Below, one piece after another: positions 13,195-59,248 of a stretch of DNA of 64,000 bases (positions are counted from its first letter, which is position 1; each line of letters starts with the position of its first letter). The stretch lies in assembly GCF_902713615.1 (NCBI RefSeq), contig NC_052146.1, positions 299,344,000 to 299,407,999 of the forward strand. Reading direction: 5' to 3'. The position numbers and the translations under genes are program-made. The stretch comes from Scyliorhinus canicula (lineage: Eukaryota). The notes beneath the pieces are model-generated. The model ran no database searches and was not told where the DNA came from. It was given only the letters and a program-made list of their open reading frames with translations.

Positions 13195-13494
13195 ATGTCT
13201 TGGAGGATGAGGTACTGCAGCCTGGTTCTGCTCTCGGGTCTCATTGTCCCTCGGGCAACCGAAGGGAAGGTTGTCCAGTCCTTCGATGAATGCAGCCAGT
13301 TCTTTTGCGAAGGCGTTGAGCCCTTTATGATCTTTAACACGACCAGAGTCTGCCAGCGCTATAACAATGAGGACCACTTCGCCACTGTGTACAGCAGAGC
13401 TCTCCGGATCCCGTGGTATTCCGCTTACAAATACCAACCTGCCTCCAATTCTTTCAAGCCCAGCAGACCCCCAAAATTCTTCATTGAGCCACAG
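13195..13494 (+). CDS. ENDOD1: ENDOD1-like endonuclease gene A, coding exon 1 (signal peptide + N-terminal part of DNA/RNA non-specific endonuclease domain)
   Basis: ATG at 13195. Signal-peptide-like MSWRMRYCSLVLLSGLIVPRATEG is followed by family-typical F-x-EC-x2-FF...CQRYNN..HFATVYS..LRIPWYSAY...FFIEPQ. The exon is exactly 100 codons and ends CAG|GTAAGA (donor GT at 13495). Whether it is an ortholog or a paralog is not resolved. Confidence 0.88.
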
Positions 13495-13819
13495 GTAAGA
13501 CGATGTGGTGCCAATCGGGGAAGCTATTGTTTTAACCTCGACCCCATCTTTAATAGATGCCAGGATTCAAGTGGAATAAATGTTCTGACTGTGGACAGTC
13601 CCTTACTCCAGTGATGGAGAATTCCAAACCCCACCAGGATTTCTCTCTTTGAGAAGCTGAATGTCTTTTTAAATTCTCCAAATTGCCTGAAGAGGCATTT
13701 TGACACCCAGTTCTTTGAGAACCACTTTGCGAATTGAGAACAAAATTAATTAGCTCAAATTCTTAAACCCACCCCCCCCCCCCCCCCAATGCGGGAGGGT
13801 GGATTTGACAGTTATGTAA

Positions 13820-14057
13820 GATTCTTTCTTTTTAAAATTTTAACGTGCCCAATTCATTTTTTTTCCCAATTAAGGGAGCGATTTAGCCTGGCCAATCCAC
13901 ACACCCTGCACATCTTTTTGGGTTGTGGGGGTGAGGCCCATGCAGACACAGGGAGAATGTGCAAACTCCACACGGACAGTGACCCGGGGCCGGGATCGAA
14001 CCCAGGTCCTCGAGGCTGGGAGCCAGCAGTGCTAACCACTGTGCCACCGTGCCGCCC
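13820..14057 (-). mobile_element. Short-tail SINE inside the intron of gene A
   Basis: Same head, core and AT tail as 120-350. Confidence 0.8.
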
Positions 14058-14162
14058 AGTAAAGTCCCGTTTAATTGAAACGATTGTGGCTCGATGTAGG
14101 TCACCCTTTCTTAAGTGAGGCAAAACGAAATTAGAACTGATGGTGTTCATTGTTCATTTTAG

Positions 14163-16610
14163 TTGGACTTGCCTGATGGTTCGCCTGAGATGAGCAAGGA
14201 GCCACCAGACGGAGTTGGGATGAATCAAGCCCTCAACAAGGATTATACAAATAAGTCATACCACCGGGGCCACTTGTGCCCATTCTCATTTCACGATGCC
14301 AGCAGTATCTCCACATGCACCCTCACCAATGTCGTGCCCAAACTGCCAGAGCTGAACAGGCTCTGGTATCAGGGTGCCGAGAAATTGATCAATATATTGT
14401 CAGGGCTGTGTAAACCAACAGAGGCCTTATTCGTGATTACTGGAGTCATCCCATCCTTCCAATTCCTCAATGGAAGAGTGAACATACCCCTGGCAATTTA
14501 CAGCTTTTACAGTTGCTGCCCAGGCGAGGAACAGAAGAAAAGGAAGAAAAAGAAGGAAGAATGTGCATCCAGATCCGGTGGTTACATCCTCCGAATGGAT
14601 AAGAAGAACCCTGTCGTGGAAGTGGCTACCCTGGCAAAATTGCAAGAATTGTTTGGCAGCTTGATTGAGGTCAACCCCGCTTGGGTCAGGGTCGCCGTTT
14701 CCAGAAGCGAATCCCAGATGGTGGAAGTGATCTATGAGTTTTTCAAACCAAGCTGGGCTAAAAGGATTTCCAGCCTGGAGCTCAGTGACATTGCTGCACC
14801 CCTGTTTGATGCCCTGAGCTTTATGGCCCGGTGTGTCTATGATTTGGTGGCTTGGATTATTTATGGGGTGTTTAGAGTTATCTGTGGAGTGGTGTTTGTT
14901 GTTTTGGCAATTATCAGAATGGTTGTGGCTCTTGTCGATCTACTGCTGGCTTCTATCGCTTGGCTCATAATGGCAATACTTCGATCAATCGGTGGCTTTT
15001 TCTGGAGAATTGGGGTTCTGTTGACCAAGGGGTTCTTATTTGTCGCTAAAAGCCTTCTGGGCCTCATTACTGGTGTAGCCAAGTTCATCCTGTTATCCAT
15101 CGCCAGCATTCCCACTTACATCATTGGTATCGTGGCTAATCTATTCACACTGCTTTCCTGTGCGAGCTTCCTGCTTCCCATCCTCAGTTTCTCAGTGAGC
15201 TTGGTCAGCTTGTTCTTTGGAACCATTCTTGTGATTGCCATTCGGCCTAATCTGTTCCTAAACCTGCTCTCTAAACTCGCCCAGTATATCACCAAACTCA
15301 TTCCATCAGTGGTCGAAACCCGCCCCCCTCCCAGCGTCACGTGGAATTGGTTACTCTCGGTCATTTCGGCATTCCAGGACCTGATGGCCAAGTTCTGGAC
15401 ACTCATGCTTGACATTCCATCTCATTGCAAAATGCTCATGGCTATTGTGTTATTTCTGCCCAGCTTGCTCCTAGGGGGTTGGCTAATTGTTGTGAGTGTG
15501 TTGGGGGGCTTGTTCTCTCTCATCTCAATGGTCACAGCCGGGATATTTGGGACAATAGCTACAGTAGTGTTGGGACTTGAAGCCCTTGTATTACTGATGC
15601 TACAGACTGTAGTCAGCTTATGTGTTACAGGCCCAGACTGGATCTTTACCACTCTTATTCCCAGATCCTTTCAATACCTGGCCACCGCTTTTTCAAAGTA
15701 CTCAGTTTACTCACACACGTACATACTGGCTATCTTGATTTGCATCTTCTTCATCCAAGTCCTGATAAAATTCTTTTCATCTTCTGAGCACCCTCGACAA
15801 TACCAATATGACAACCAACCCATCTTCAAAGATAATAGCGTCAAGCTAAATCCCACACCAGGCAAAGTTAATCTGTCCAATGTAACCCGTACTGCCCACC
15901 CAGTCTCCATCAAGCCTCCAGGTTTAAGGCGCCCCAGTCAAATTCCTGTCCAGCCTAATACCGAGAGGGACACTGCTAAAGTTTATTTCAGTTATGCTAA
16001 GGGATTTTGTACAGAGAACATAATTCCCATCCTTATCATTGTCCCTGGAGTTTTAATTGATCATGCCATTTCCTGCCCTTTTCTGTATGGTGACATCCGT
16101 ATTCGTACGTTAGCGATTGCTGTTGCTGTTTTGGTGTCTGTGGTTACTGATGGAACCAGTCCCAGATATTCCCGAGCCTTCCTTCTTGCAGCAATTGCTG
16201 CCGGTGTCATTGTTGTATACAATGTGATCACCTATTTTATCACAGGAGTATACAATTGTATGTGTTTGGCTTTCACAAACATTGGCCCAATCATTTTTCT
16301 AGTCATTGTCATAGGAATTGGCGTCATGATTGCCAGTGGCGGTCATTTGGATTGTTTCCTTGTTGGAATAAGTGCCAATCTCCCCATCTCCCTCACCACA
16401 GCTTTCCTAAACACTGGCACAGCCATCAAAGAAGCTAGCAGGGATAGGCCACCGATCATGCTTAGTTTATTGGTTATTATTTTCATCTTACTTATTCAAA
16501 GGAGTGATTCCCTCAACTATGTTGTTACGGAATTTCTTCAACTAATCTTCGCTGGAATTTTCGCTGTCCTTGCTTTGATAATAAAGGAGTCAATTCATCC
16601 ACGGATATGA
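14163..16610 (+). CDS. ENDOD1: ENDOD1-like gene A, coding exon 2 (catalytic half of nuclease domain + ~600-aa multi-hydrophobic tail); spliced product 915 aa
   Basis: Pyrimidine tract and AG at 14161-14162, phase 0. Uninterrupted 815-codon frame with QALNKDY..YHRGHLCP..TCTLTNVVP..LNRLWYQGAE..FVITGVIP..GRVNIP..YSCC, then long hydrophobic stretches. TGA at 16608-16610. Confidence 0.88.
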   Translation: MDLPDGSPEMSKEPPDGVGMNQALNKDYTNKSYHRGHLCPFSFHDASSISTCTLTNVVPKLPELNRLWYQGAEKLINILSGLCKPTEALFVITGVIPSFQFLNGRVNIPLAIYSFYSCCPGEEQKKRKKKKEECASRSGGYILRMDKKNPVVEVATLAKLQELFGSLIEVNPAWVRVAVSRSESQMVEVIYEFFKPSWAKRISSLELSDIAAPLFDALSFMARCVYDLVAWIIYGVFRVICGVVFVVLAIIRMVVALVDLLLASIAWLIMAILRSIGGFFWRIGVLLTKGFLFVAKSLLGLITGVAKFILLSIASIPTYIIGIVANLFTLLSCASFLLPILSFSVSLVSLFFGTILVIAIRPNLFLNLLSKLAQYITKLIPSVVETRPPPSVTWNWLLSVISAFQDLMAKFWTLMLDIPSHCKMLMAIVLFLPSLLLGGWLIVVSVLGGLFSLISMVTAGIFGTIATVVLGLEALVLLMLQTVVSLCVTGPDWIFTTLIPRSFQYLATAFSKYSVYSHTYILAILICIFFIQVLIKFFSSSEHPRQYQYDNQPIFKDNSVKLNPTPGKVNLSNVTRTAHPVSIKPPGLRRPSQIPVQPNTERDTAKVYFSYAKGFCTENIIPILIIVPGVLIDHAISCPFLYGDIRIRTLAIAVAVLVSVVTDGTSPRYSRAFLLAAIAAGVIVVYNVITYFITGVYNCMCLAFTNIGPIIFLVIVIGIGVMIASGGHLDCFLVGISANLPISLTTAFLNTGTAIKEASRDRPPIMLSLLVIIFILLIQRSDSLNYVVTEFLQLIFAGIFAVLALIIKESIHPRI

Positions 16611-16758: not shown

Positions 16759-17073
16759 NNNNNNNNNNNNNNNNNNNNNNNNNNNNNNNNNNNNNNNNNN
16801 NNNNNNNNNNNNNNNNNNNNNNNNNNNNNNNNNNNNNNNNNNNNNNNNNNNNNNNNNNNNNNNNNNNNNNNNNNNNNNNNNNNNNNNNNNNNNNNNNNNN
16901 NNNNNNNNNNNNNNNNNNNNNNNNNNNNNNNNNNNNNNNNNNNNNNNNNNNNNNNNNNNNNNNNNNNNNNNNNNNNNNNNNNNNNNNNNNNNNNNNNNNN
17001 NNNNNNNNNNNNNNNNNNNNNNNNNNNNNNNNNNNNNNNNNNNNNNNNNNNNNNNNNNNNNNNNNNNNNNNNN
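16759..17073. other. Assembly gap (315 N) followed by a (CT/CTTT)n microsatellite
   Basis: Run of N, then a pyrimidine-rich simple repeat at 17074-17165. Confidence 0.98.
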
Positions 17074-17454: not shown

Positions 17455-17931
17455 TTCCCTTCCCATCCTTCCCTTCCGCTTCTGCCATGGTGTAGGCCGT
17501 GACGGCGGAGGAAGAGAAAGAGTGCCCCCCACAGCACTGGCCCGCCCGCCGATCGTTGGGCCCTGATCGCGGGCCTGGCCACTGTGGGGGCACCCCCCCC
17601 CCCCCCCCCCCGGGGTCCGATCGCCCTGCGCCCCCACCAGGACCCCGGGGGCCCGCTCACGCCGCCGACCCCGCCGCCACCAGAGGCGGTTCAAACCTCG
17701 GCGGCGGGAGAGGCCTCCCAGCCGTGGGACTTTGGCCCATCACGGGCCGGAGAATAACGGCAGCACAGAAACCCGTAGCCTCCCGCCGGCCCCCGCCATT
17801 CTCCGAGGTGGGCGGCGGGATTGGCGGCACGCCGACTTTTTGCGGGTGGGAGAATTCTGGACACGGCGGGGGCGGGATTTTCGGCGGCCCCGGACGATTC
17901 TCTGACCCTGCTGGGGGTCGGAGAATTTTGC
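17455..17931. mobile_element. GC-rich non-coding repeat (partial MITE-like element) abutting a SINE 3' half
   Basis: CpG-rich, ends ggagaattttgccc. Related in style and motifs to 4750-5020, 22361-23034 and 44890-45390. Confidence 0.55.
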
Positions 17932-20699
17932 CCCGTGTCTGTGTGGGTCTCACCCCCACAACCCAAAAAAATGTGGATTGGCCACGCTAAATTGCCTCTT
18001 AATTGGAATTAAACACAAAAAAAATGAATCAATGGCCACCTGACGTTAAAGTATTAAGCTTCAGTCAAGACGGGTCAGCCAAACTTTCAGCATCAGAGCA
18101 TAACTTAAATCAGCTCTGTTCATCACAATTAGGGTGTCTAAAATTCACCGTGTGTGACATTACAAGATTCAGTTGACAGGTTGATAAGGTGGTTAAGAGG
18201 GCGTGTAAAATCCTTTCCTTTATTGGCTGAGGTATAGAAGGTAAGGTTATGCTGAATCTGTGCAAAACATTAGTCAGGCCACAACTTGAGTACTGCGGGT
18301 GGGTCTGGTCACACAAAGGAAGCACAGAGGGAGATTTCCAAGGATGTCGCCAGGACTGGAAAATTGCAGCGATGAGGAAAGATTGGAGAGGGTGGGGAGA
18401 GATTGGATAGGCTGGATCAGAGGAGGCTGAGGGGAGATTTGATTGAGATGTACAAGAGTGTGCGGGGCCTGGATAGAGTGGGTGGGAAGGGTCTGTTTCC
18501 TTTAGTAGACAGGTCAGTGACTAGGGCGCATAGATTTGATGCAATTGGTAGAATGATTAGACGGGAGATAAGGAAGTGTTTTTTCACCCAGAGGGTTCTG
18601 GAATTGACTTCCCGAAACCCTCAAATTATTTAAAAGGTATCTGGATATGCACCTGATTAGACTGGGCGGTCTGTTTTTAGAAATGAAATGAAATGAAAAT
18701 CGCTTATTGTCACGAGTAGGCTTCAATGAAGTTACTGTGAAAAGCCCCTAGTCGCCACATTCCGGCGCCTGTCCGGGGAGGCTGGTACGGGAATCGAACC
18801 GTGCTGCTGGTCTGCTTTAAAAGCCAGCGATTTAGCTCAGTGAGCGAAACCAGCCCCTAGTGAGCTAAACCAGCCCCTTCATCTGATGGTGTATCCAAAC
18901 ATTCCCTGTGCTATAATACAAAATATGCAAAAAGAGGGTGATTATCAATGATGAAAAGATTATTACTGTTCAGTGTTAAGCTTTGATCAACTAAGCTAAT
19001 AAATACTGTGAAATAGTTAATCCAACGCTGGGCAACTAACTGCACGTCACTTTCAGAGTTGATCCCTGGTCTTTGTTGAGTTTACTGGTCCCAGCTCTGA
19101 TGACATTTAAAGCATTTTGGCGTTTCTTCTCCTGTGTATCAATCCTTGTTGAAAGTGCCTGCATGTGGGTGAGGACAGGTTGAGGTACCCCAATTTCTGA
19201 ATACACCTCCGACACTTATGGTCACAGCTCACGGGTGAGGAATGTTTGCACTTATAGAGAGTCAATTATCTCCGATAGAACTGTAGCACAGTAAGGATTC
19301 AGCACAGTGGGGAGGAGCAAAAAGCTTAGCAAAGACAAAAGAAACCACAGAATATTCAGACACGTATATGTTTAAACCAGAGTTTGAAAAACTCCCCTCC
19401 ATCAATGTTACCAGCTGAGCCGGTTTGATCTCTGTTTTTTTCTTTCTATTTGACTGTTATGATCAATGAAAAGAACACAGTGCTTTCAGGCAAGGCATTG
19501 GTCGAAAAGACGTGTCTTTGTATTCATTGTGTGACCCATATATTTTTAACATGTACAATTTCTGTTATGATCTTTAAGATGTGCCACGTATGAAGCAGAA
19601 GCATGTATTTGATTCAAGTTGCCATGCTTGACTAGATCTGCCAGTCAAACTTGCGAAACTGGTCTTATCTGTATTGAAGTTGCTTTATGTGAGTGCAAAG
19701 CAAAGGCTGTTTTCAGCAAAACTTAACCTTTTGTACTGTGCGTGTCGTTGCGATGATTTGAGCATAACCTACTTTTTCAATAAACTAATTATTTTTGATC
19801 AAATCGCGTCCAAATGTCTTTGAAAATTTATGTCATAAAGCAGCCCCAACAGCCTGTATTCATGTAGCAACTTTGCCGCTGTCAAAGGCCCTAAGGTGCT
19901 TCATGAGGGCGCTATCACACAAATTTGACACAAAGCCACATCTAGGGACATTAGGCCCGATGACCAAAAGTTTGGTCAAAGAGATATGTTTTGAGAGGAA
20001 GGAGGGAAGAAAGGAATTGAGGTTGAGAGGTCAGGGATAAAGTCCCAGAGCTTGGAGCCTCTTGGCAGCAGAAAACACCAGTGGAGGAGCAAATAAAGTA
20101 AGGATGTGCAAGAGACAGTCGATGAGTCAAAATCCTGGAACTCCCTCCCTAACAGCGCTGTGGGTGTGCCTACACTTCATAGATGCCAACAGTTCAAGAA
20201 CACTACCGCCTTCTCCAGGACAGTTAGGGATGGGCGATAAATGTTGTCTTAGCCGCCAGCGACGCCCACATCCCATGAAAGAATAAATACAAAGATAGGA
20301 AGGGGAGAGGCCACGGAGGGATCTGATGAGGATGCAGTGCAAGGAATCCTGGTTCCCCCACTGAAAATGTTAGAAGGAACAGAACTGCTCCTCACACATT
20401 ATTAATGAGTCTCAGCCCCTAAGTTAGCAAGTGTCCTCAGTTCTGACACTTCCTCTCACCTTAGATGCCAGGGTAAATCAATTAGCAGCACTTCTGCCTC
20501 TGATGTCAGCTGGTCACGGCTTTATGTTCCAACGGATTTGAGCACAAAATGTAGGACAGTAAAATGTCAGAGGTGCCGACATTATACCAAGGCCCTCTCA
20601 GGTTGTATGCTCTGGATCCTGTGCGACTATTTTGAAGAAGAGTAGGGAAGTTCTCCTGATATCATGGCCATTTACCCTTCCAGCAACAGGATCATTATC

Positions 20700-25039: not shown

Positions 25040-28000
25040 GGGGGGGGGGTCACATGATCGGAGTGCGGGAATGGCTGCGCTTTTACGCGCGTCGGCTCTA
25101 CTCATCTTTTAATCCACCTTTTCATCCTTGTGCACATTTCTTTATTGTCTTTTCTTGGTTTCCATGATTTGTACAAAGTCCTGAGAATTGTGGGCTGATA
25201 TTTCTGCAGGATAGAACCAGGATAGAATATTTGAATCCTCACTTGCTCTTGATGGCTGGGAGGAGTTGGGCTGGGCCCTGCCGCCTTTCGTGGCCCAGTT
25301 GCCTTTGAACGGGCTCCCTCCCTGACGGTGCGGTGTGCCAACGAATATACCGTTTTTGCTGAAAGTCTCGACTCTGTGGAGCAGATCATCAAGGCCCATT
25401 TCCAACGGGCCGAGCAGGGGGTGCTGGCCTGTGGCGGGCAGGGGATGGGTTATGGCTAGTCGGCAGGGGAGGCGAGGCAGGGAGTCCTCTGATCCGGCTG
25501 ATAACCTGGAATGTGAGGGGGCTGAATGGGCCGGTCAAACGGGCCCGGGTGTTTACGCACCTGAAGGGGCTGAAGGCGGACGTGGCCATGCTCCAGGAGA
25601 CGCACCTGAAGGTGGCGGACCAGGTTAGACTGAGGAAGGACTGGGTAGGCCAGGTGTTTCATTCGGGGCTGGATGCAAAAAATCAGGGGGGGGGGGCGAT
25701 TCTGGTGGGAAAAAGGGTGTCGTTTGAGGCGTCAAAGGTGGCGGCTGACAGCGGAGGGAGGTATGTGATGGTGAGCGGCAAGCTGCAAGGGCAGCGGGTG
25801 GTGCTGGTGAATGTCTATGCCCCAAATTGGGAAGATGCGGGTTTTATGCGGCGCATGTTGGGCCGCATTCCGGATCTAGAGACCGGGGGGGGGGCCTGAT
25901 ACCGGGAGGGGACTTTAACACAGAGCTGGATCCCCTATTGGATCGATCCATGTCCAGGACGGGTAGGAGGCCCGCAGCGGCTAAGGTGTTGAGGGGGTTT
26001 ATGGACCAGATGGGCGGGGTGGATCCTTGGAGGTTCGCGAGGCCGAGGGCCAGGGAGTACTCGTTTTTCTCCCACGTGCATAAGGCCTATTCGAGGATTG
26101 ATTTTTTTTGTCCTGAGCAGGGGGCTGATTTCGAGGGTGGAGGATGCCGAGTATTCGGCCATAGTCATTTTGGACCATGCCCCGCACTGGGTAGACCTTG
26201 AGCTGGGGGAGGAGAGGGACCAGCGCCCGCTCTGGCGCCTGGAGGTGGGACTGCTGGCAGATGAGAAGGTGGGCGGGCGGGTTCGGGGGTGTATCAAGAG
26301 GTACTTAGAGGCCAATGATAATGGGGAGGTCCGGGTGGGGACGGTTTGAAGGCAGTGATTAGAGGGGAGTTGATTTCCATCCGAGCCCATAGAGAGAGGG
26401 GAGAGCAAAGAGAGAGGGAGAGGTTGGTGGGGGAGATAGTGAGGGTGGACAGAAGATATGCGGAGGCTCTGGAGGAGGGACTGTTGAGGGAGCGACGTAA
26501 CCTTCAGGCCAAGTTCGACTTGTTGACCACAGGAAAGGCGGAAGCTCAGTGGAGGAAGGCACAGGGAGCGGTGTACGAATATGGGGAGAAGGCGAGTAGG
26601 ATGCTGGCGCATCAGCTACGTAAGCGAGACGCGGCCAGGGAGATTGGTGGAGTGACGGATAGGGGAGGCAATGTGGTGCGAAGGGAGGTGGACATTAATG
26701 GGGTCTTCAGGGACTTTTATGGGGAATTGTATCGGTCCGAGCCCCCGGTGGAGGGGGGGGGGGGAAATGGGGTACTTTTTGGATAGGCTGAGATTTCCGA
26801 AGGTGGAGGAGGGACAGGTGGAGGGGCTGGGGGCGCCGTTTGAACTGGAGGAGCTGGTCAAAGGGATAGGCAGCATGCAGTCGGGGAAGGTGTCGGGGCC
26901 GGATGGGTTTCCGGTCGAATTTTACAAACTATATGCGGACCTGTTGGGCCCCCTGTTGGTTAGGACCTTTAACGAGGCAAGGGAGGGGGGGGGGGGGGCT
27001 TTGCCCCGACTATGTCACGGGCGCTGATTTCCTTGATCCTTAAACGGGCCAAGGACCCCCTGCAGTGTGGATCATATAGGCCGATCTCGTTATTAAATGT
27101 AGATGCCAAGCTGTTGGCGAAGATCTTGGCCACAAGGATAGAGGACTGTGTGCCGGGGATCATTCATGAGGACCAGAAGGGGTTTGTGAAGAGAAGGCAG
27201 CTGAACACCAATATACGTAGGCTTCTGAATGTTATAATGATGCCGGCGGTAGAAGGGGAGGCGGAGATAGTGGTAGCAGTAGACACGGAGAAGGCCTTTG
27301 ATAGGGTTGAGTGGGGGTACTTGTGGGAGGTGCTGGAAAGGTTTGTGTTTGGGGAGGGGTTTGTCAATTGGGTGAGGCTGTTATATGAAGCCCCGATGGC
27401 AAGCGTAGCCACGAATAGGAGGGGATCGGAGTACTTTCGGTTGTACTGGGGGACGAGGCAGGGGTGTCCCCTGTCCCCTTTGCTCTTTGCGTTGGCAATT
27501 GAGACCCTAGCCATGGCATTGAGGGAGTCGAGGAATTGGAGGGGTCTGGTGCGGGGTGGGGAGGAGCACCGAGTGTCATTATATGCAGATGACTTGTTGC
27601 TTTATGTGGCGGACCCAGTGGGGGGAATGCCGGAGGTGATGCAGATCCTTAGGGAATTTGGGGGCTTTTCTGGGTACAAGCTGAACCTGGGTAAGAGTGA
27701 GCTGTTCGTCGAGCACCCGGGGGACCAAGAGGAGGGGATTGGTAGGCTCCCGTTGAAAAGGGCGGGGAGGAGCTTTCGGTACCTGGGGGTCCAGGTGGCT
27801 AGGAGCTGGGGGGCCCTTCACAAGCTTAACCTCACTAGGCTGGTGGAGCAAATGGAGGAGGAGTTCAAAAGATGGGACATGTTGCGGCTGTCACTGGCGG
27901 GTAGGGTGCAGTTCGTCAAGATGACGGTGCTCCCAAGGTTTTTGTTTCTGTTCCAGTGCCTCCCCATCCTTATCCCGAAGGCCTTTTTTAGGAGGGTCAA

Positions 28001-29480
28001 CAGGAGTATTACGGGATTTGTGTGGGCGCATGGGACTCCGAGGGTGAGAAGGGTGTTTTTGGAGTGGGGCAGGGATAGGGGGGTACTGGCGCTGCCCAAC
28101 CTCTGTGGGTACTATTGGGCTGCCAACGCAGCGATGGTGCGTAAGTGGGTAATGGACGGGGCAGGGGCAGCATGGAAGAGGATGGAGATGGCGTCCTGCG
28201 TGGACACGAGCCTGGAGGAGCTGGTAACGGTGCCGTTGCCGCTCCCTCCAACGAGGTATACCACGAGCCCGGTGGTGGCGGCTACCCTCAAAATCTGGGG
28301 GCAATGGAGATGGCATAGGGGGAGGTGGGGGGCTCTATGGAGGCCCCGATATGGGGGAACCATCGGTTTGTCCCTCGGAGCATTGATGGCTGGTTTCTTG
28401 GCGGGCACAGGGTAGGTATTAGGAGGTTGAGAGACCTGTTTGTGGATTGGAGGTTTGTGAGCCTGGGTGAGTTAGAGGCGAAGTTTGGGCTCCCCCCCCG
28501 GGAACACGATAGGTACATGCAGGTTAGGGCGTTTGCCAGGCGGCAGGTGGAGGGGTTCCCTCTGCTGCCCCCACGTGGGGCACAGGACAGTGTGCTCTCG
28601 TGGGTGTGGGTTGGAGGGGGGAGGATTTCGGACGTGTACCACGTCATGCAGGAGGTGGATGAGGCCTCGGTGGAGGAGCTGAAGGGTAAATGGGAAGAGG
28701 AGCTGGGTGAGGAGATTGAGGAGGGGACGTGGGCGGATGCCCTGGAAAGAGTGAATTCCTCCTCTTCCTGTGCGAGGCTTAGCTTCATACAGTTCAAGGT
28801 GCTTCATAGGGCCCACATGACCGGGACGAGGATGAGTAGGTTTTTCGGGGGCGAAGACAGGTGTGCTAGGTGCTCGGGGAGCCCAGCGAACCACGCCCAT
28901 ATGTTCTGGAAGGGGGTAGCAAGGACGATGTCGAGGGTGGTAGGATCCAGGGTCAAGCCAGGCTGGGGACTCGCAGTTTTTGGGGTTGCAGTGGAGCCGG
29001 GAGTGCAGGAGGCGAAAGAGGCCGGTGTTCTGGCCTTTGCGTCCCTAGTAGCCCGGCGGAGGATCTTGCTTCAATGAAAGGATGTGAGGCCCCCAAGCGT
29101 GGAGGCCTGGATCAATGATATGGCGGGGTTCATCAAATTGGAGAAGGAGAAATTTGCCCTGAGGGGATCAGTACAGGGGTTCTTTAGGCGGTGGCAGCCT
29201 TTCCTGGACTTCCTGGCAGAACGGTAGGAAAATAGGCCGGCAGCAGCAGCAACCCGGTGGGGAGGGGGGGGGGGGGGGGGGGGGTTTGTTTCGGGGGAAG
29301 GGTGAAATGTGTATATGTGTTTATCTATTTCTTCTGTTTGTAGTTACTGGGGAGGGGGGGGGGTTGGTTTTGAAGGGTTAGTGTGTTTTTCTTTTGGTTG
29401 TTAATACTGCTTTCTTGTTGTTATTTTCTGTTTTTGATATGTTTTGGAAAATCTCAATAAAAATTATTTAAAAAAAAAAA
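25040..29480 (+). mobile_element. L1-clade LINE with nearly complete but frameshifted ORF2 (APE endonuclease-RT-CCHC) and no recognisable ORF1
   Basis: LITWNVRGLN..VAMLQETH..VNVYAPN..GGDFN..YSRID..DHAP (APE). YRPISLLNVDAK..EKAFDRVEW..GTRQGCPLSP..YADD (RT). CARC..HAHMFW. 3' UTR with aataaa and an A-tail ending at 29480. Confidence 0.92.
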
Positions 29481-52428: not shown

Positions 52429-52854
52429 ATTGATATTCCATAATCTCCGTACCATTCCTAGTGGAGTTTGCATCCTAAATACTAAAAGATGCAGCATCTT
52501 CTATAGGATGCCCCAAAGCATTTTGTAGCCAATTACGTACTGAAGAGGCGCAGTCACTGTTGTAATATACGTATATAATCAATTTGTGCATAGCAAGCTC
52601 CCGCAAATAAGCAGACCAGATATTGACCAGATTAATCTTTTTCATGATATTGTTTAAGGGATAAGTATCAGCCAGGGCATGATTAAAAGGAGTGGTTGGC
52701 GACGAGCTTACAGAGATATTAGAATGTTGATTAATGGCTCGGAGAGGAGCCATCAGAGGGTGCTAAATGGTGGTTCCTGGAGCTTGGGATTCATTGACAA
52801 ATATTATCTTCATTCGGTATTGTATGGAAAGCTGATCCTTGGAAAAGCCAAGAA

Positions 52855-53946
52855 TTACAGAATTCTGACAATGGACTGGATCAACCTGGCAGACCATGAG
52901 ATGGCACCAAAAGTGTCCGATATGATGCTGCCCATAATGCCCAAGAGGTCTTGGGGAACCGTGACCACTGTGACAATTAGGTACTTGACCATGATGGCCA
53001 GACACATGGCACAGTCATGGATAATCCCAGTGGGAACTCTTAAAATTGTCACCGCCAAAATTCGGACAAGGTTGACAACAGTTCCAATGAGTCGGCCAAG
53101 GGCTGATACCCCATTGGTGACCAAGGTGATTATTCTTCCCAGGGGGGCCAAGGCACTGGTGATGGTGGACTGGCAAACACCCTCATCGACCTCTTCACTG
53201 GCTGGTTCTGGTGGTGTGTCAGCTTGCTCTGTTGCCAGATCTTCGCCATCCACTGCTGGGTTTTGCTCTGCAGGAGTGGGGGGAGAATTCTCTTCCACTA
53301 TATCCTGTTCGTCCACACTAATGGCTAATTTTTGTACCAGCTCGTCCACCTCTTTGAAGGTCTCCGCCTCATCATCTTGGCTCGTTCCTCCACAGCTGGC
53401 AAAGATCCTGCCCCCTCCCAGTCTGTCCTCCAACTCTCTCACTGTCAGGTGCTCTGCCTTTGCTTCAGGCACCATTTGTTTCAAGAATGCAGTGGAAAAT
53501 TCCTTATCGTATGTTGCTATGTCCTCTCCCTCTGATTCCACGTCATCATTTAGGCAGGGGTCGTTATTCTGGTCTTGGGGGAAGGTGCAGCAAAGAGCGG
53601 TCCAGACGGTTCCAGGCACCGAGACCCTGTTTTTCATTTTCTCTGCCAACGGGTTGCTAGCACCCGTCACAAAGTACACTGATCGACCGGACTTGTGGCA
53701 TGTCTGCGCCAACTTCTGGGTCAGCGCCTCCACCTCCTTGTACCACCTGACATTGGCCCCGTGTTTCTCGGGCACTGCGTTGGTGAGGGTGCAGGTACTC
53801 GTGGCGCTCTCCTTGCGATTTAGTATGAATGGGTAGAGGTGGCCTCGCTCATAGCCCGTACCATGGTAGTCCACATCAACCGCCTGCAACTCACTGAAAT
53901 CCAATTTGCAGCTTGTCATCTCCTTTATATTAGCAGAATCCTCAAT
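52855..53946 (-). CDS. ENDOD1: ENDOD1-like gene B, coding exon 2 (catalytic half, acidic linker, amphipathic/hydrophobic C-tail); spliced product 466 aa
   Basis: Acceptor TTTTGTCTGTGTTGGTTTCAG|ATT, phase 0. QAVDVDY..YERGHLYP..TCTLTNAVP..ANVRWYKEVE..YFVTGA..RVSVP..VWTALCC. TAA at 52857-52855. Confidence 0.88.
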   Translation of the reverse strand: MEDSANIKEMTSCKLDFSELQAVDVDYHGTGYERGHLYPFILNRKESATSTCTLTNAVPEKHGANVRWYKEVEALTQKLAQTCHKSGRSVYFVTGASNPLAEKMKNRVSVPGTVWTALCCTFPQDQNNDPCLNDDVESEGEDIATYDKEFSTAFLKQMVPEAKAEHLTVRELEDRLGGGRIFASCGGTSQDDEAETFKEVDELVQKLAISVDEQDIVEENSPPTPAEQNPAVDGEDLATEQADTPPEPASEEVDEGVCQSTITSALAPLGRIITLVTNGVSALGRLIGTVVNLVRILAVTILRVPTGIIHDCAMCLAIMVKYLIVTVVTVPQDLLGIMGSIISDTFGAISWSARLIQSIVRIL

Positions 53947-56900
53947 CTGAAACCAACACAGACAAAAATGTGAGAAAGATTCAAGCATTGTTATATGATT
54001 CCTCAATGGACCTTCATATCTCCAACCAGGTCTACACCAGTGACCAAAGATGACACAGTGCCCGCAGAGATCAACACACCAGCAATCTCAAGGAGCAATG
54101 AGATTCACTGCCAGTTCTCACCTTTATACTGGTATCCATACATTCCACTCATTTCTTCTATTTTCCTTGTCTTAAATAATTTATTGCAGAACAAATCCTA
54201 ATTTATTTTTAATGTATTTGCTGTTTAAATAAACACGTTAGAATCAAAACTGTAGAATGATCACGGCACAGCAAAAGGCCATTCAGCCCACTGTGTCTAT
54301 TCGAATTGGCTGCAAGTGCAAATCAGCTGGTCCCACTCCCTCACCCTTTCCCCATATAACCCTGTAATGTTTGTCTCCAATTCCCTTTTGAAAGCCATAA
54401 TTCCTGCGTCCCCCACACTCTTCGGCTGTGCAATTCAGATCCCAGCCACTCACTGTGTGAAAGAAGGTTTCCCCTCGTGCCCTGTTCCCAATAACCTTAA
54501 ATCTGTGTCTTCTGTTTCTCAGCCTTTCTTCCGATCTACTGTTGGCCTTTTTAATAATGAGGCTCTATTTATTTATTTATTTTAAAAAAAAATTTAGATT
54601 ACCCAATTATTTTTTCCAATTAAGGGGCAATTTAGCGTGGCCAATCCACCTACTCTGCACATTTTTGGGTTGTGGGGGCGAAACCCACGCAGACACGGGG
54701 AGAATGTGCAAACTCCACACGGACAGTGACCCAGAGCCGGGATCGAACCTGGGACCTCAGCGCCGTGAGGCGGTTGTGCTAACCACTGTGCCACCGTGCT
54801 GCCCTATGATGCTCTATTTATAATGTGGTGTTATGTCTCAACAGTGTCGCCAATACTGTGGGTATTTATACAACTTCAGGGCAACCGGCACTGTGCAGAT
54901 GGATAAGGCCTTTATCTTGATCTCACGTGGCTGGTTTGGAGAAGTGGCTCTGTCCCTGCTGGGCTCATCCGTCAGGTAGTGATCATTGACCTTGAACTTG
55001 GCTGTCTGGTCGTTATGCTGCAGTTGGTGTGGGCACAGGCCAATCCCAAAAGTGGCTGGCACAGGCCGGGTCCAAAAGAGGCAGAACACATGGCTGTGTC
55101 CCCTTTTATACCTGTGGGATTTTGCGCCCTTTGGGGCGGTCCTTGATCTTGGACCTAGTAATTTGACAGGGCTCTGATCACTGCCAATAAAGGGGCGGTG
55201 CCTTGGTGGCTGGACGGGTCCTTAACGGTCATTGACCTTGGCAGTTGGGCTCTCTGAGTAAAGGGAGTGGCGCCAAGCAGTCTGTGGCTGTACCGGTTTC
55301 TTGATTGGAGTCCTATTATTCTGGGGAACGGGCGGGGGTTTCGATCAGGTCTAGCTACCTGCGTTTCAAATACACAGAAGCTCTGTATCTGTGTTGGCCA
55401 TAATTCCCACGGTCCTTTGCAGGTGGCCATCTCAGATGGCTACACTACTCAATCCAGACCTCTTGTAGATCTATCCATGCAACATGAATTTCCTCATTCC
55501 TGGGAACCATTCTTGTGAATCTTTTCTGCACCCTCTCTAAAGCCACAGCATGGCAGCACAGTGGTTAGCACTGTTGCTTCACAGCGCCAGGGACCCGGGT
55601 TCAATTCCCGCTATTGTCACTGTCTGTGTGGAGTCTGCACGTTCTCCCCGTGTTTGCATGCGTTTCCACCGGGTGCTCTGATTTCCTCATACATGTCCCG
55701 AAAGACGTGTCGTGTTAGGTGAATTGGATGTTCTGAATTCTCCCTCAGTGTACCCGAACAGGTGCCAGAGTGTGGTGACTAAGGGCTTTTCACAGTAACT
55801 TACATTGCAGTTAATGTCAGCCTACTTGTGATACTAATAATGATTATTATTACCTTCACATCCTCCCCTAAAACCTGGTGCCTACAACCGGACACAAGTT
55901 AAGGTCGATCCAGTATTTTATAAAAGGGTCGTGGGTGTCACTGGTTAGATCAGCATTTATCGCCCATCCCTAATCTGACCTTCTCATTTTTTTAAATTTA
56001 AAGTGTCCAGTTCTTTTCTTTTCCAATTAAGGGGCAATTTAGCGTGGCCAATCCACCTACGCTGCACGTCTTTGGGTTGTGGGGGTGAGAACCACGCAGA
56101 CACAGGGAGAATGTAATTTGACCTTCCAAAGGGCAAATAGAGATGGGCAATAAATGCTGGCCTAGGCAGTGACACCCACACCCCTGTTAAAGATTTAAAA
56201 ACACCCATCTTAACATTTTGCTATTCTGCACTGTGCTTTATTTATGAAATTCAGGACCCAGGGTGGCACAATGGCGCAGTGGTTAGCACTGCTGCCTCAC
56301 AGCGCTGAGGACCCGGGTTCGATCCCGGCCCCGGGTCACTGTCCGTGTGGAGTTTGCACATTCACCACGTGTCTGTGTGGGTCTTACCCCCACAACCCAA
56401 AGATGTGCAGAGCGGGTGGATTGGCCACGCTAAATTGCCCCTTAATTGGAAAAAATATTTTTGTTGAAAGAATTGCATCTACTGTTATATTTTGCCTCTC
56501 CTTGTTTTCCTTGTACAATTTCACACTTCTTGGTAATCAATTTCATCTATCAAATGTGCGCCCATTCCACCAGCCTGCCTGTGTCCTCTTGAAACGCATC
56601 ACCGACCTCCTCACATTTCACAATACATAGGAAGCAGGAGCAGGAAGAGGCTGTTTGGCCCATTGAACCCGCTCTACCATTCAGCTGGATCGTGGCTGAT
56701 CATTTCCCTCAAAGTCACGTTCCCGAGCTAGCCCCGTATTATGTCTCTAGAATCCAGAAATGTATTCTAACCACTATGTGCTAACCACTATGTTACCGGG
56801 CAGCACAGTAGCATAGTGGTTAGCACAATTGCTTCACAGCTCCAGGGTTCCAGGTTCGATTCCCGGCTTGGGTCACTGTCTGTGCAGAGTCTGCACATCC

Positions 56901-59248
56901 TCCCCGTGTCTGCGTGGGTTTCCTCCGGGTGCTCCGGTTTCCTCCCACAGTCCAAAGATGTGCAGGTTAGGTGGATTGGCCATGATCAATTGCCCTTAGT
57001 GTCCGAAATTGCCCCTTAGTATTGAGTGGGATTACTGGGTTATGGGGATAGGGTGGGGGTGTGGGCTTCGGTAGGGTGCTCTTTCCAAGGGCCAGTGCAG
57101 ACTCGATGGGCCGAGTGGCCTCCTTCTGCACTGTAAATTCTATGATTCTATTGATTTCTGCCTTGAATCTACCCAATGACTGAGCTTCCACAACCCTCTC
57201 AGGTAGGGAATTCCAAAGATTTGCCTCCGAGTGAAGAAATCCTCCTCATCACAGTCTGCAAGGACCTCCCCTTTACTCTGAGACTGTGTCCCCTGGTTCT
57301 AGACTAATCAGCCAGGGGAAATGACCAGTCCTCATCTACCATGTCACACTCTTGTGAGAATTTTCTTCAGGTGTTGTGTCATCTGCAAATTTTGAAATTA
57401 AGCCTCGTCCACCGAAAGTCCAGTTTATTAATGTAGATTAAGGAAAGCAATAATTTTGTAAACCTCTCTCCAGCCCGAGAAGCAACCAATCACCACCACT
57501 CTTAGTTGCCCATCATTCAGCCTATTTGTATCTCCGCTGCTGCTATCCTGTTCATGCCATAAACTTCAGGTTCGCTGACAAGTCTGTTGTGTGGCACTGT
57601 GTCGAATGTCTTTTGGAAGTCCATGTACACCACATCAACAACATTACCCTCATCTACCCTCGCTGTTACCTCATGAAAAAGCTCCAGCAACCTAGTTATA
57701 CGTGATTTGCCTTTAACACATCTGTGCTGGTTTTCCTAAACAAATCCACATTTGTCCAAGGAACAGTTAATTTGATCCTGGATTATCACTTCTAATCTCA
57801 TCATTCTTTAAAGTGTTTCCGCCACTGAGGTTAAACTGACTAGTTTTATGTTGCTGGGTTTATCCTTGCATTATTTTTTGAATACGGGTGTAACATTTGC
57901 AGTTCTCCCGTCCTCTGGCATCACGCCAGTATCGGAGGAGAATTGGAAGGTTACTATAGAATCATAAAATCACTGCAGTGCAAAGGATTAGGGTTAGGCG
58001 ACCATTCAGCCCATTGAATCTATGCAAACCCTCTGAAAGAGCACTCTCCCCATGCCCACTCCACCATCCGTCCTCGTAACCCCATAATCTAACGTGCCCA
58101 CCTTGGACACAAAAGGGCAATTTCGCATGGCCAATCCACCTAATCTGCACATCTTTGGACTGTTGGGAGAAAGCCGGAGCACCCGGAGGAAACCCGCACA
58201 GACATGGGAAGAACGTGCAAACTCCATACAGACAGTGACCCAAGGCCGGAATTGAATCCAGGTCCCTGGTGCTGTGAGGCAGCAGTGCTAACCACTGTGC
58301 CCCCGTATTGCACCCACCTCAAATACCCGTGATTCTGTAATTTGCTCCCTCACTCTCCTCGGTATCCTTAGACGCATCTCATCTAATCCTGGTGATTTAA
58401 GAATCATAGAATCCCTACACTGCAGAAGGAGGCCATTCGGCCCATAGAGTCTGCACCAACCCTCCAAAAGGGCACCCTACCTCGGCTCAATTATCCGCAT
58501 TATCCCCGTAACTCCACCTGACCTGCATTTCTGTGGACTGAGAGAGGAAACTGGAGCACACGGAAGGAACCCACGCAGAAAAAGTGAGAAAATGCAAACT
58601 GCACAGTCACCCAAGGTCGGGAATCGAACCCGGGTCCCTGGCGCTGGGAGACGGCAATACTAACCAGTACAATTAGACTATCTAATCTGGTCAATGTTTA
58701 GTTCATCCAGTATCTCCATCACCACACCCCACCATGACTTAAGCAGCGCCAACCTCCTTAGTAAAGGCAGACAGACGTAAAGTATTCATTTGGTAACCTC
58801 AGCCATGCCCTCCACCCCCATGTGTAGATTGACTTCACAGTCTCCAGTCTGCTCAATTCGCCTCTTTCCTGCCCTGTCAGATGCCCTGCAGAAGGTGGCC
58901 ACTCTGCCCATCCGGGCTTCGATAGCAAAAAAAAACTGTCCCAAATCCAAACCCCCCCATGGAAAGTTAAGATCCCATTCGGACAGGGCGCCCCCCCCCC
59001 CCCCCCCCCCCCCCGCAATTTGCTGCACATATTCTGTTCAGCGGGTGCCCCTGCCAATCTCATCAGGTTACAAACTTCCCAACATTCCCAACCCCCCACC
59101 ACCTCCAGTGAAAGCAATTAGCTCATAAATCACTCCAGCTTCAACCATTCCCCCGAATCGATTGGTTTGGTGTGACCCTGCCCCAGTTTCATCGCATTGG
59201 AGTCAGACTGAACCGCACGGGGGGTGGGGGGGGGGGGGTATCAGTTAC

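Follow-up and report, generated by a model that had tools for sequence, protein, structure and literature searches.

Does a shark ENDOD1-like nuclease gene really run on, within one exon, into a hydrophobic tail longer than the nuclease itself, and what might such a tail be for? The question is raised by a locus of Scyliorhinus canicula in a window of 64,000 nucleotides (nt; RefSeq assembly GCF_902713615.1, contig NC_052146.1, positions 299,344,000 to 299,407,999 of the forward strand), which is the whole stretch of DNA that was analysed and to which all coordinates refer. We confirmed that the gene in question, here called gene A, is a real two-exon shark nuclease gene of the ENDOD1 family, with a product of 915 amino acids (aa) that carries an enlarged membrane tail. 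We favor the reading, at a probability of about 0.65, that gene A is a functional ENDOD1-family paralog (Endonuclease_NS, beta-beta-alpha-Me) whose product is a lumenal or surface nuclease held by this enlarged membrane-embedded tail. The gene structure, the conservation, the restricted distribution and the intact catalytic residues on which this reading is built are established below.

Gene model and nuclease domain

The open-reading-frame listing gives 815 codons for 14163..16610 (+). An open frame of this length has a chance probability of (61/64)^815, about 1e-17, and thus cannot be attributed to chance. Exon 1 (13195-13494) contributes 100 codons and ends in phase 0 at a GTAAGA donor, and a TTTTAG acceptor stands directly before 14163. 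When 13494 is joined to 14163, the product has 915 aa and its sole stop lies at the end, as the original prediction had it. The gene is composed of the following parts:

13195..13494, +, exon 1: opens with the start codon and a hydrophobic, signal-peptide-like stretch, followed by the beginning of the nuclease; phase-0 end after ...FFIEPQ
13495..14162, +, only intron: 668 nt, GT...AG, contains a SINE-like repeat (SINE, short interspersed nuclear element)
14163..14687, +, exon 2, rest of the nuclease domain, aa 101-275: RGH (H137), N156, E173
14688..14792, +, junction segment, aa 276-310: moderately hydrophilic; helical in the AlphaFold2 model
14793..15092, +, striped amphipathic hydrophobic segment, aa 311-410: charges heptad-like on one helical face; ends K-F-I-L-L-S-I-A-S-I-P
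15093..15788, +, uncharged hydrophobic block, aa 411-642: ~5-7 transmembrane (TM)-like segments, one loop at aa 471-513
15789..15998, +, hydrophilic Pro/basic linker, aa 643-712: NLS/NVT sequons; poorly conserved
15999..16610, +, C-terminal block (C block), aa 713-915: ~7 hydrophobic segments, conserved polar motifs; TGA stop at 16608-16610

Hydropathy was calculated by the Kyte-Doolittle method in 19-residue windows. The product is near-continuously hydrophobic over aa ~324-642 (nt ~14830-15788), hydrophilic over aa 643-712, and then shows ~7 hydrophobic segments over aa 713-915. This profile matches the layout read earlier from the letters, namely a tail in the same exon without a stop, made of a hydrophobic block, a Pro/basic linker and a second block. 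That second block had been credited with about 6-7 discrete TM-like segments. The number of hydrophobic segments agrees, but on a stricter insertion-energy scale only 3 segments of the C block are among the 11 of gene A that pass, 8 of which lie beyond aa 410. The C block is therefore described here as TM-like, not as a certain 6-7-pass bundle; several of its hydrophobic segments are short (14-17 residues). Neither tandem nor dispersed DNA repeats were found within exon 2, nor any internal repeat or pseudo-symmetry in the protein sequence, and the tail is thus not the product of a recent duplication. The 3' untranslated region cannot be traced because a run of 315 N (16759-17073) begins 148 nt past the stop. 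Beyond this run, G+C is 70% over 17500-18000, where both strands carry low-complexity Pro/Gly frames.

The nuclease domain is recognizable with standard profiles. Pfam Endonuclease_NS (PF01223) matches the exon-2 product with 27.5 bits (cut-off 23, E 2.9e-6), and the exon-1 piece adds a further, weak 15.1 bits. A single-sequence search of PDB with gene A gave no match; a profile of 19 shark family members was needed, and it matches Anabaena NucA (1zm8/2o3b) at E 1e-10, and EndoG and EXOG too. R135-G136-H137, N156 and E173 are invariant in the 19 members, A-type proteins (gene A and its orthologs) included, and align with the RGH, N and E of NucA. Because the His, Asn and Glu are both aligned with NucA and invariant, the nuclease of gene A is plausibly active as an enzyme. 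NucA, EndoG and EXOG have this catalytic core (RGH His, metal-binding Asn, Glu) in common with gene A, but they are soluble or singly anchored proteins of 240-350 aa, and none of them has a polytopic C-terminal tail. By inspection, the N-terminus of gene A is hydrophobic, with small residues ahead of Lys25, and the same holds for the orthologs P0001, P0003 and P0004.

Conservation of the tail in other sharks

A word-indexed search with the tail matched two proteins. The Scyliorhinus torazame ortholog has 912 aa and is recorded as a 'hypothetical protein' (UniRef name Endonuclease domain-containing 1 protein); its tail is 88% identical over 100%. The Carcharodon ortholog has 854 aa ('uncharacterized protein LOC121273336') and a tail that is 56% identical. 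A cluster look-up added a Cetorhinus protein (900 aa) and a shorter Carcharodon isoform, which begins at an internal Met and has the complete tail. Gene A is 89% identical to S. torazame and 59-61% identical to Carcharodon, and the Carcharodon and Cetorhinus orthologs together lie at 56-61%. The ortholog gene spans on record (3366, 3089 and 3250 nt) fit two exons and one intron of ~500-650 nt. A-type sequences are already public, as 'uncharacterized' or 'hypothetical' proteins, and the gain of the present work is interpretation rather than gene discovery.

A profile of three tails was run with hmmsearch exhaustively, without a word index, against 1.84 billion representative proteins. There were 2 matches at E<=0.001, the Carcharodon representative and a 416-aa protein of Heterodontus francisci (XP_067901807.1, P0003, 'endonuclease domain-containing 1 protein-like'). 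The latter matches profile positions 1-165 only and then ends, at ~aa 440 of gene A, which is inside the first hydrophobic block and near the point where the tails of B-type proteins end (those of the type of paralog B, the second nuclease gene of the window). The short model may mean that the ancestral protein was short, that this one was truncated later, or that its annotation was simply made to end there. No match was found outside these sharks, so that the tail is not routine in the ENDOD1 family; a routine tail had been named in advance as a point against the idea.

Stops or frameshifts in related sharks had been named in advance as a sign that would speak against the tail. There are none in the four species (S. 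canicula included), in which the tail can be aligned throughout; the S. torazame, Carcharodon and Cetorhinus orthologs keep it at full length with few in-frame indels. Identity to Cetorhinus varies by region:

Nuclease domain: 63%
aa 324-410: 62%
aa 411-470: 58%
Loop, aa 471-513: 49%
aa 514-642: 61%
Linker, aa 643-712: 42%, 13-aa deletion
C block, aa 713-915: 64%, no gap in 203 columns

Taken over both lamniforms, the uncharged block (aa 411-642) is 57-62% identical, with the loop at 49%, and the C block is 64-65% identical, gap-free (93% to S. torazame). The junction segment (aa 276-310) is 40-51% identical to its counterparts in lamniforms and Heterodontus, and 85% identical to that of S. 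torazame. The linker is 40-42% identical to Carcharodon and Cetorhinus, both of which have the 13-aa deletion. This deletion spans the NLS/NVT sequons to which the original prediction had drawn attention, so the sequons are uninformative on topology. By Fisher tests, the conservation of the C block is like that of the nuclease (p 0.84) and exceeds both that of the linker (p 0.004) and that of the loop (p 0.01). Unconstrained DNA at such divergence would not give this pattern of domains and linkers, with few in-frame indels and no stops, which supports the view that the tail is coding sequence. The domain/linker pattern of conservation may also point to purifying selection on the tail.

These data bear directly on the idea that little of the tail is produced in vivo, with transcripts that end or splice early and a frame that has stayed open only through the slow change of shark genomes. 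The Heterodontus model of only 416 aa would fit such a gene, as would the lack of a full-length S. canicula model in the protein collection and the fairly high amino-acid divergence of 11% between the two Scyliorhinus species. However, at 56-61% identity many stops and frameshifts would be expected in ~1900 unconstrained nt, the degree of conservation differs from region to region (C block 64% vs linker 42%), and the NCBI models of Carcharodon (two isoforms) and Cetorhinus retain the whole tail. Sequencing runs add a further argument. Four runs of one 2021 study (X6-X9; type not on record; contigs of 230-300 Mb) hold 65-84% of the sampled exon-2 words, and at 84% most of the 1.9-kb tail is necessarily covered. 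The intron stretch 13500-13930 has 9 holder runs, which are large DNA-type assemblies and one other run of the 2021 study, and none of them is among X6-X9. That X6-X9 contain exon-2 words while the adjacent intron stretch is missing from their matches fits spliced RNA but does not amount to proof, and transcription of gene A is only indirectly indicated. On balance we regard a tail that is mostly not made as very improbable.

Origin and possible role of the tail

The combination of signal peptide, nuclease and polytopic part had been put forward as an architecture that could not be recognized. Here the original prediction has to be corrected, since human ENDOD1 has been described in exactly these terms: it is reported to have a signal peptide, a nuclease and three C-terminal TM motifs (PMC9126970), and has been called 'an uncharacterised polytopic protein' of the membrane of the endoplasmic reticulum (ER) (PMC7332293). 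It is found in the RNF26 complex of the ER, which modulates STING (PMC9126970, PMC7332293). Human or vertebrate ENDOD1 (500 aa) and gene A both have a signal peptide (putative in gene A), one Endonuclease_NS-type domain and a C-terminal hydrophobic region that is predicted to cross the membrane. In the human protein this region has three predicted TM motifs in a tail of well <250 aa, whereas the tail of gene A has ~640 aa and comprises a striped segment of ~100 aa and, beyond it, no fewer than 8 TM-like segments together with a linker and a terminal module that is conserved but has no homolog. The architecture of gene A is thus not new in kind but is the family's own, greatly enlarged; unusual are its size, the orphan extension and the narrow distribution.

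A search with paralog B retrieved 35 ENDOD1-like proteins of elasmobranchs, sharks and rays, none of which is long-tailed. They have 267-468 aa, and in the comparison with the full-length A-type the other ENDOD1-like proteins have 302-468 aa, far below its 854-915 aa. To compare tails, the residues lying within hydrophobic 19-mers after aa 260 were counted:

A-type, full length: 386-441
Heterodontus A-type: 137
B-type: 60-81
~341-429-aa type: 26-60
~300-340-aa type: 0

By this count, the other tailed paralogs reach 26-81 residues and full-length A-type proteins 386-441, and a hydrophobic tail is thus a family trait of graded length, with gene A the extreme. When the nuclease domains of shark and ray proteins are placed in a tree, the five A-type proteins form a clade (100% in the Shimodaira-Hasegawa-like approximate likelihood ratio test, SH-aLRT) on a long branch outside all others, and gene A is therefore a paralog of the B-type and not the B-type itself. 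B-type proteins occur in sharks and rays, whereas gene A is known so far from galeomorph sharks only. No A-type protein from Mustelus, orectolobiforms, squalomorphs or batoids turned up in the protein searches, which could reflect loss or missing annotation. Papers on ENDOD1 paralogs of sharks were looked for in the literature, and none turned up.

In the first part of the tail, the charges form a stripe. The charged residues of aa 309-407 are spaced at 4, 7, 8, 11, 14 and 15 residues, and their helical phases fall within an arc of 140 degrees. In a test of this stripe over aa 305-410, the resultant was 0.80 at 99 degrees per residue, a value that 1 of 5000 shuffles reached. The stripe is kept in four orthologs (the score is reached by 1 to 39 of 5000 shuffles), and an unbiased scan of the whole tail selects aa 311-410, with 4 of 1000 shuffles reaching the score. 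The later blocks of the gene A tail have no comparable charge stripe. In B-type tails it is weaker, with a resultant of 0.59-0.66 that 136-654 of 5000 shuffles reach. The only similarity between the A and B tails lies in K-F-I-L-L-S-I-A-S-I-P of A and K-Y-L-I-V-T-V-V-T-V-P of B, which BLASTP, hhalign and tBLASTn place in the same register; the match is suggestive, not significant. From this motif to the end of the protein there are 35 aa in Heterodontus and 32 aa in the B-type. Because both end at a similar distance past the motif, aa ~300-440 may be the ordinary family tail and aa ~441-915 an addition, unless Heterodontus has lost the remainder.

If aa ~441-915 were added, they might have been born de novo, by loss of a stop and read-through into T-rich 3' sequence, as a generic anchor and nothing else, on an ancestral tail of ~170 aa as in Heterodontus. 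This partly overlaps our preferred reading. It would account for the end of the Heterodontus A-type model 35 aa past the motif, near the ends of B-type tails, and for an extension that has no homolog in the 1.84 billion representative proteins and for which neither Pfam nor the Atlas offers a lead. The coding strand is rich in T (AT skew -0.22 to -0.27), and TM segments have been described as emerging from thymine-rich DNA outside genes (PMC7005711). However, T-richness is to be expected from hydrophobic codons anyway, the Heterodontus stop may have arisen later by truncation or reflect how the gene was annotated, and ~475 codons in one step would be unusual. The C block also has more than an anchor needs, with clustered polar motifs and a gap-free identity of 64-65% that equals that of the catalytic domain. 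We therefore consider an origin as a mere anchor doubtful.

The motifs of the C block were compared in four sequences from two lineages. Polar and small residues are conserved in clusters in or near the hydrophobic segments: T-D-G-T-x-P-R-Y-S-R-A, N-V-I-T-Y-F-I-T-G-V-Y, F-T-N-I-G, I-S-A-x-L-P-x-S-L and V-T-E-F-L-Q. That such clusters are kept speaks for a specific fold, more than a greasy anchor. A bolder proposal is that aa ~441-915 were added after the split from Heterodontus, either by stop loss and read-through into T-rich non-coding DNA or by taking in a gene that has since disappeared, and were kept since the split of lamniforms and carcharhiniforms, so that the last 203 aa would be a new polytopic domain with a specific function tied to the lumenal or extracellular nuclease. 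We put this forward tentatively and think it rather unlikely. As conserved as the catalytic domain, the C block is a candidate for a new membrane domain, and possibly an instance of a long coding extension that has become fixed.

It had also been suggested that the tail resembles a channel or transporter, is coupled as such to the nuclease and acts, for example, in uptake of nucleic acids or nucleotides or in innate sensing. In keeping with this are the many TM-like segments, the polar residues that the C block conserves within its hydrophobic segments and the link of human ENDOD1 to cGAS-STING signalling (PMC7332293). However, Pfam searches with the tail blocks returned noise only at E<=10 (DUF2070 at E 0.22, HAP at E 0.026 and DSRB at E 0.23, all far under their cut-offs), with no similarity to a transporter or channel; the curated membrane families of Pfam-A, SID1-type RNA channels included, gave no credible match to the tail at this threshold either. 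The ESM Atlas gave no usable neighbour for the tail queries, one of which was limited to the last 115 aa. There is no internal repeat or pseudo-symmetry in the sequence, the AlphaFold2 models are unusable, and the short C-block segments, of which only 3 pass the stricter scale, fit such a module poorly. The suggestion thus found no support from Pfam or the Atlas, and we judge it quite unlikely.

We return to the preferred reading of a nuclease held by its tail. For its topology, localisation and activity, and for the role of its tail, we infer the following. The putative signal peptide would place a probably active nuclease in the lumen of the ER or endomembranes or on the cell surface, and the greatly enlarged membrane-embedded tail would hold it there. 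The first part of the tail (aa ~300-440), a very hydrophobic helix with a one-sided charge stripe, would probably lie at the membrane interface or form short hairpins. The remaining ~475 aa would be an orphan extension containing 8 or more TM-like segments, a linker that evolves fast and a well-conserved polytopic module of 203 aa. The tail may work as in human ENDOD1, by membrane anchoring and by assembly with other membrane proteins through TM domains, rather than in the manner of a known transporter.

Several observations weigh against this reading. Gene A diverges faster than paralog B, with 89% vs 93-94% identity to S. torazame and ~60% (59-61%) vs 74% to Carcharodon, and constraint on it may therefore be weak. 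The A-type model of Heterodontus stops at 416 aa. A full-length model of S. canicula gene A is absent from the protein collection, and an exact look-up of an internal-Met form of this protein was also unmatched; gene A may be unannotated or differently modelled in its own species. Homology between tail A and tail B falls short of significance (BLASTP E 0.018-0.056; hhalign E 0.06, probability 0.9%). Finally, the AlphaFold2 models, made from 4-5 sequences, are all-helical and of low confidence, with a pLDDT (predicted local distance difference test) of 37.6 for the C block and 49.7 for block 1.

ENDOD1 is a poorly understood membrane-bound nuclease that is tied to cGAS-STING signalling and DNA repair in humans. 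Shark paralogs with tails from none to ~640 aa form a natural series in which the contribution of the tail can be tested.

Paralog B and other features of the window

Paralog B lies on the minus strand (exon 1 59557-59249, exon 2 53946-52855) and encodes an ENDOD1-like protein of ~466 aa. An acidic linker leads to a hydrophobic tail of ~110 aa, close to the short tail of about 100 aa that had been ascribed to it. It is 93-94% identical to a 465-aa protein of S. torazame, and its orthologs (P0006-P0017) have 455-468 aa and occur in sharks and rays. Two coding exons and a phase 0 intron after EPQ are common to gene A (13494|14163) and paralog B (59249|53946, minus strand). The two genes are also alike in the invariant RGH, N and E residues and in a hydrophobic tail whose charges tend to one helical face, and they have in common the weakly similar motif K-[FY]-h-h-x-[ST]-h-x-[ST]-h-P. 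They differ in tail length: with 60-81 strongly hydrophobic residues in B against 386-441 in full-length A-type proteins, the tail of the latter is ~6x longer.

Opposite exon 2 of paralog B, 52679-53836 (+) holds an open frame of 385 aa, probably no more than a shadow of the real gene. Reverse-transcriptase (RVT_1) frames occur near the nuclease genes, both in the interval between them and alongside: one is split (8691-10144, +) and one has 467 aa (27012-28415, +; E 7e-37). Both derive from retroelements, as copies or as remnants. The SINE-like element in the intron of gene A (13789-14118, +) is repeated in the intron of paralog B at 54542-54823 (+), 56244-56630 and 57962-58243, in both orientations. 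Its copies are visible as frames with the common translation ...CGGE-HADTGRMCKLHTDSDP-PGSN....

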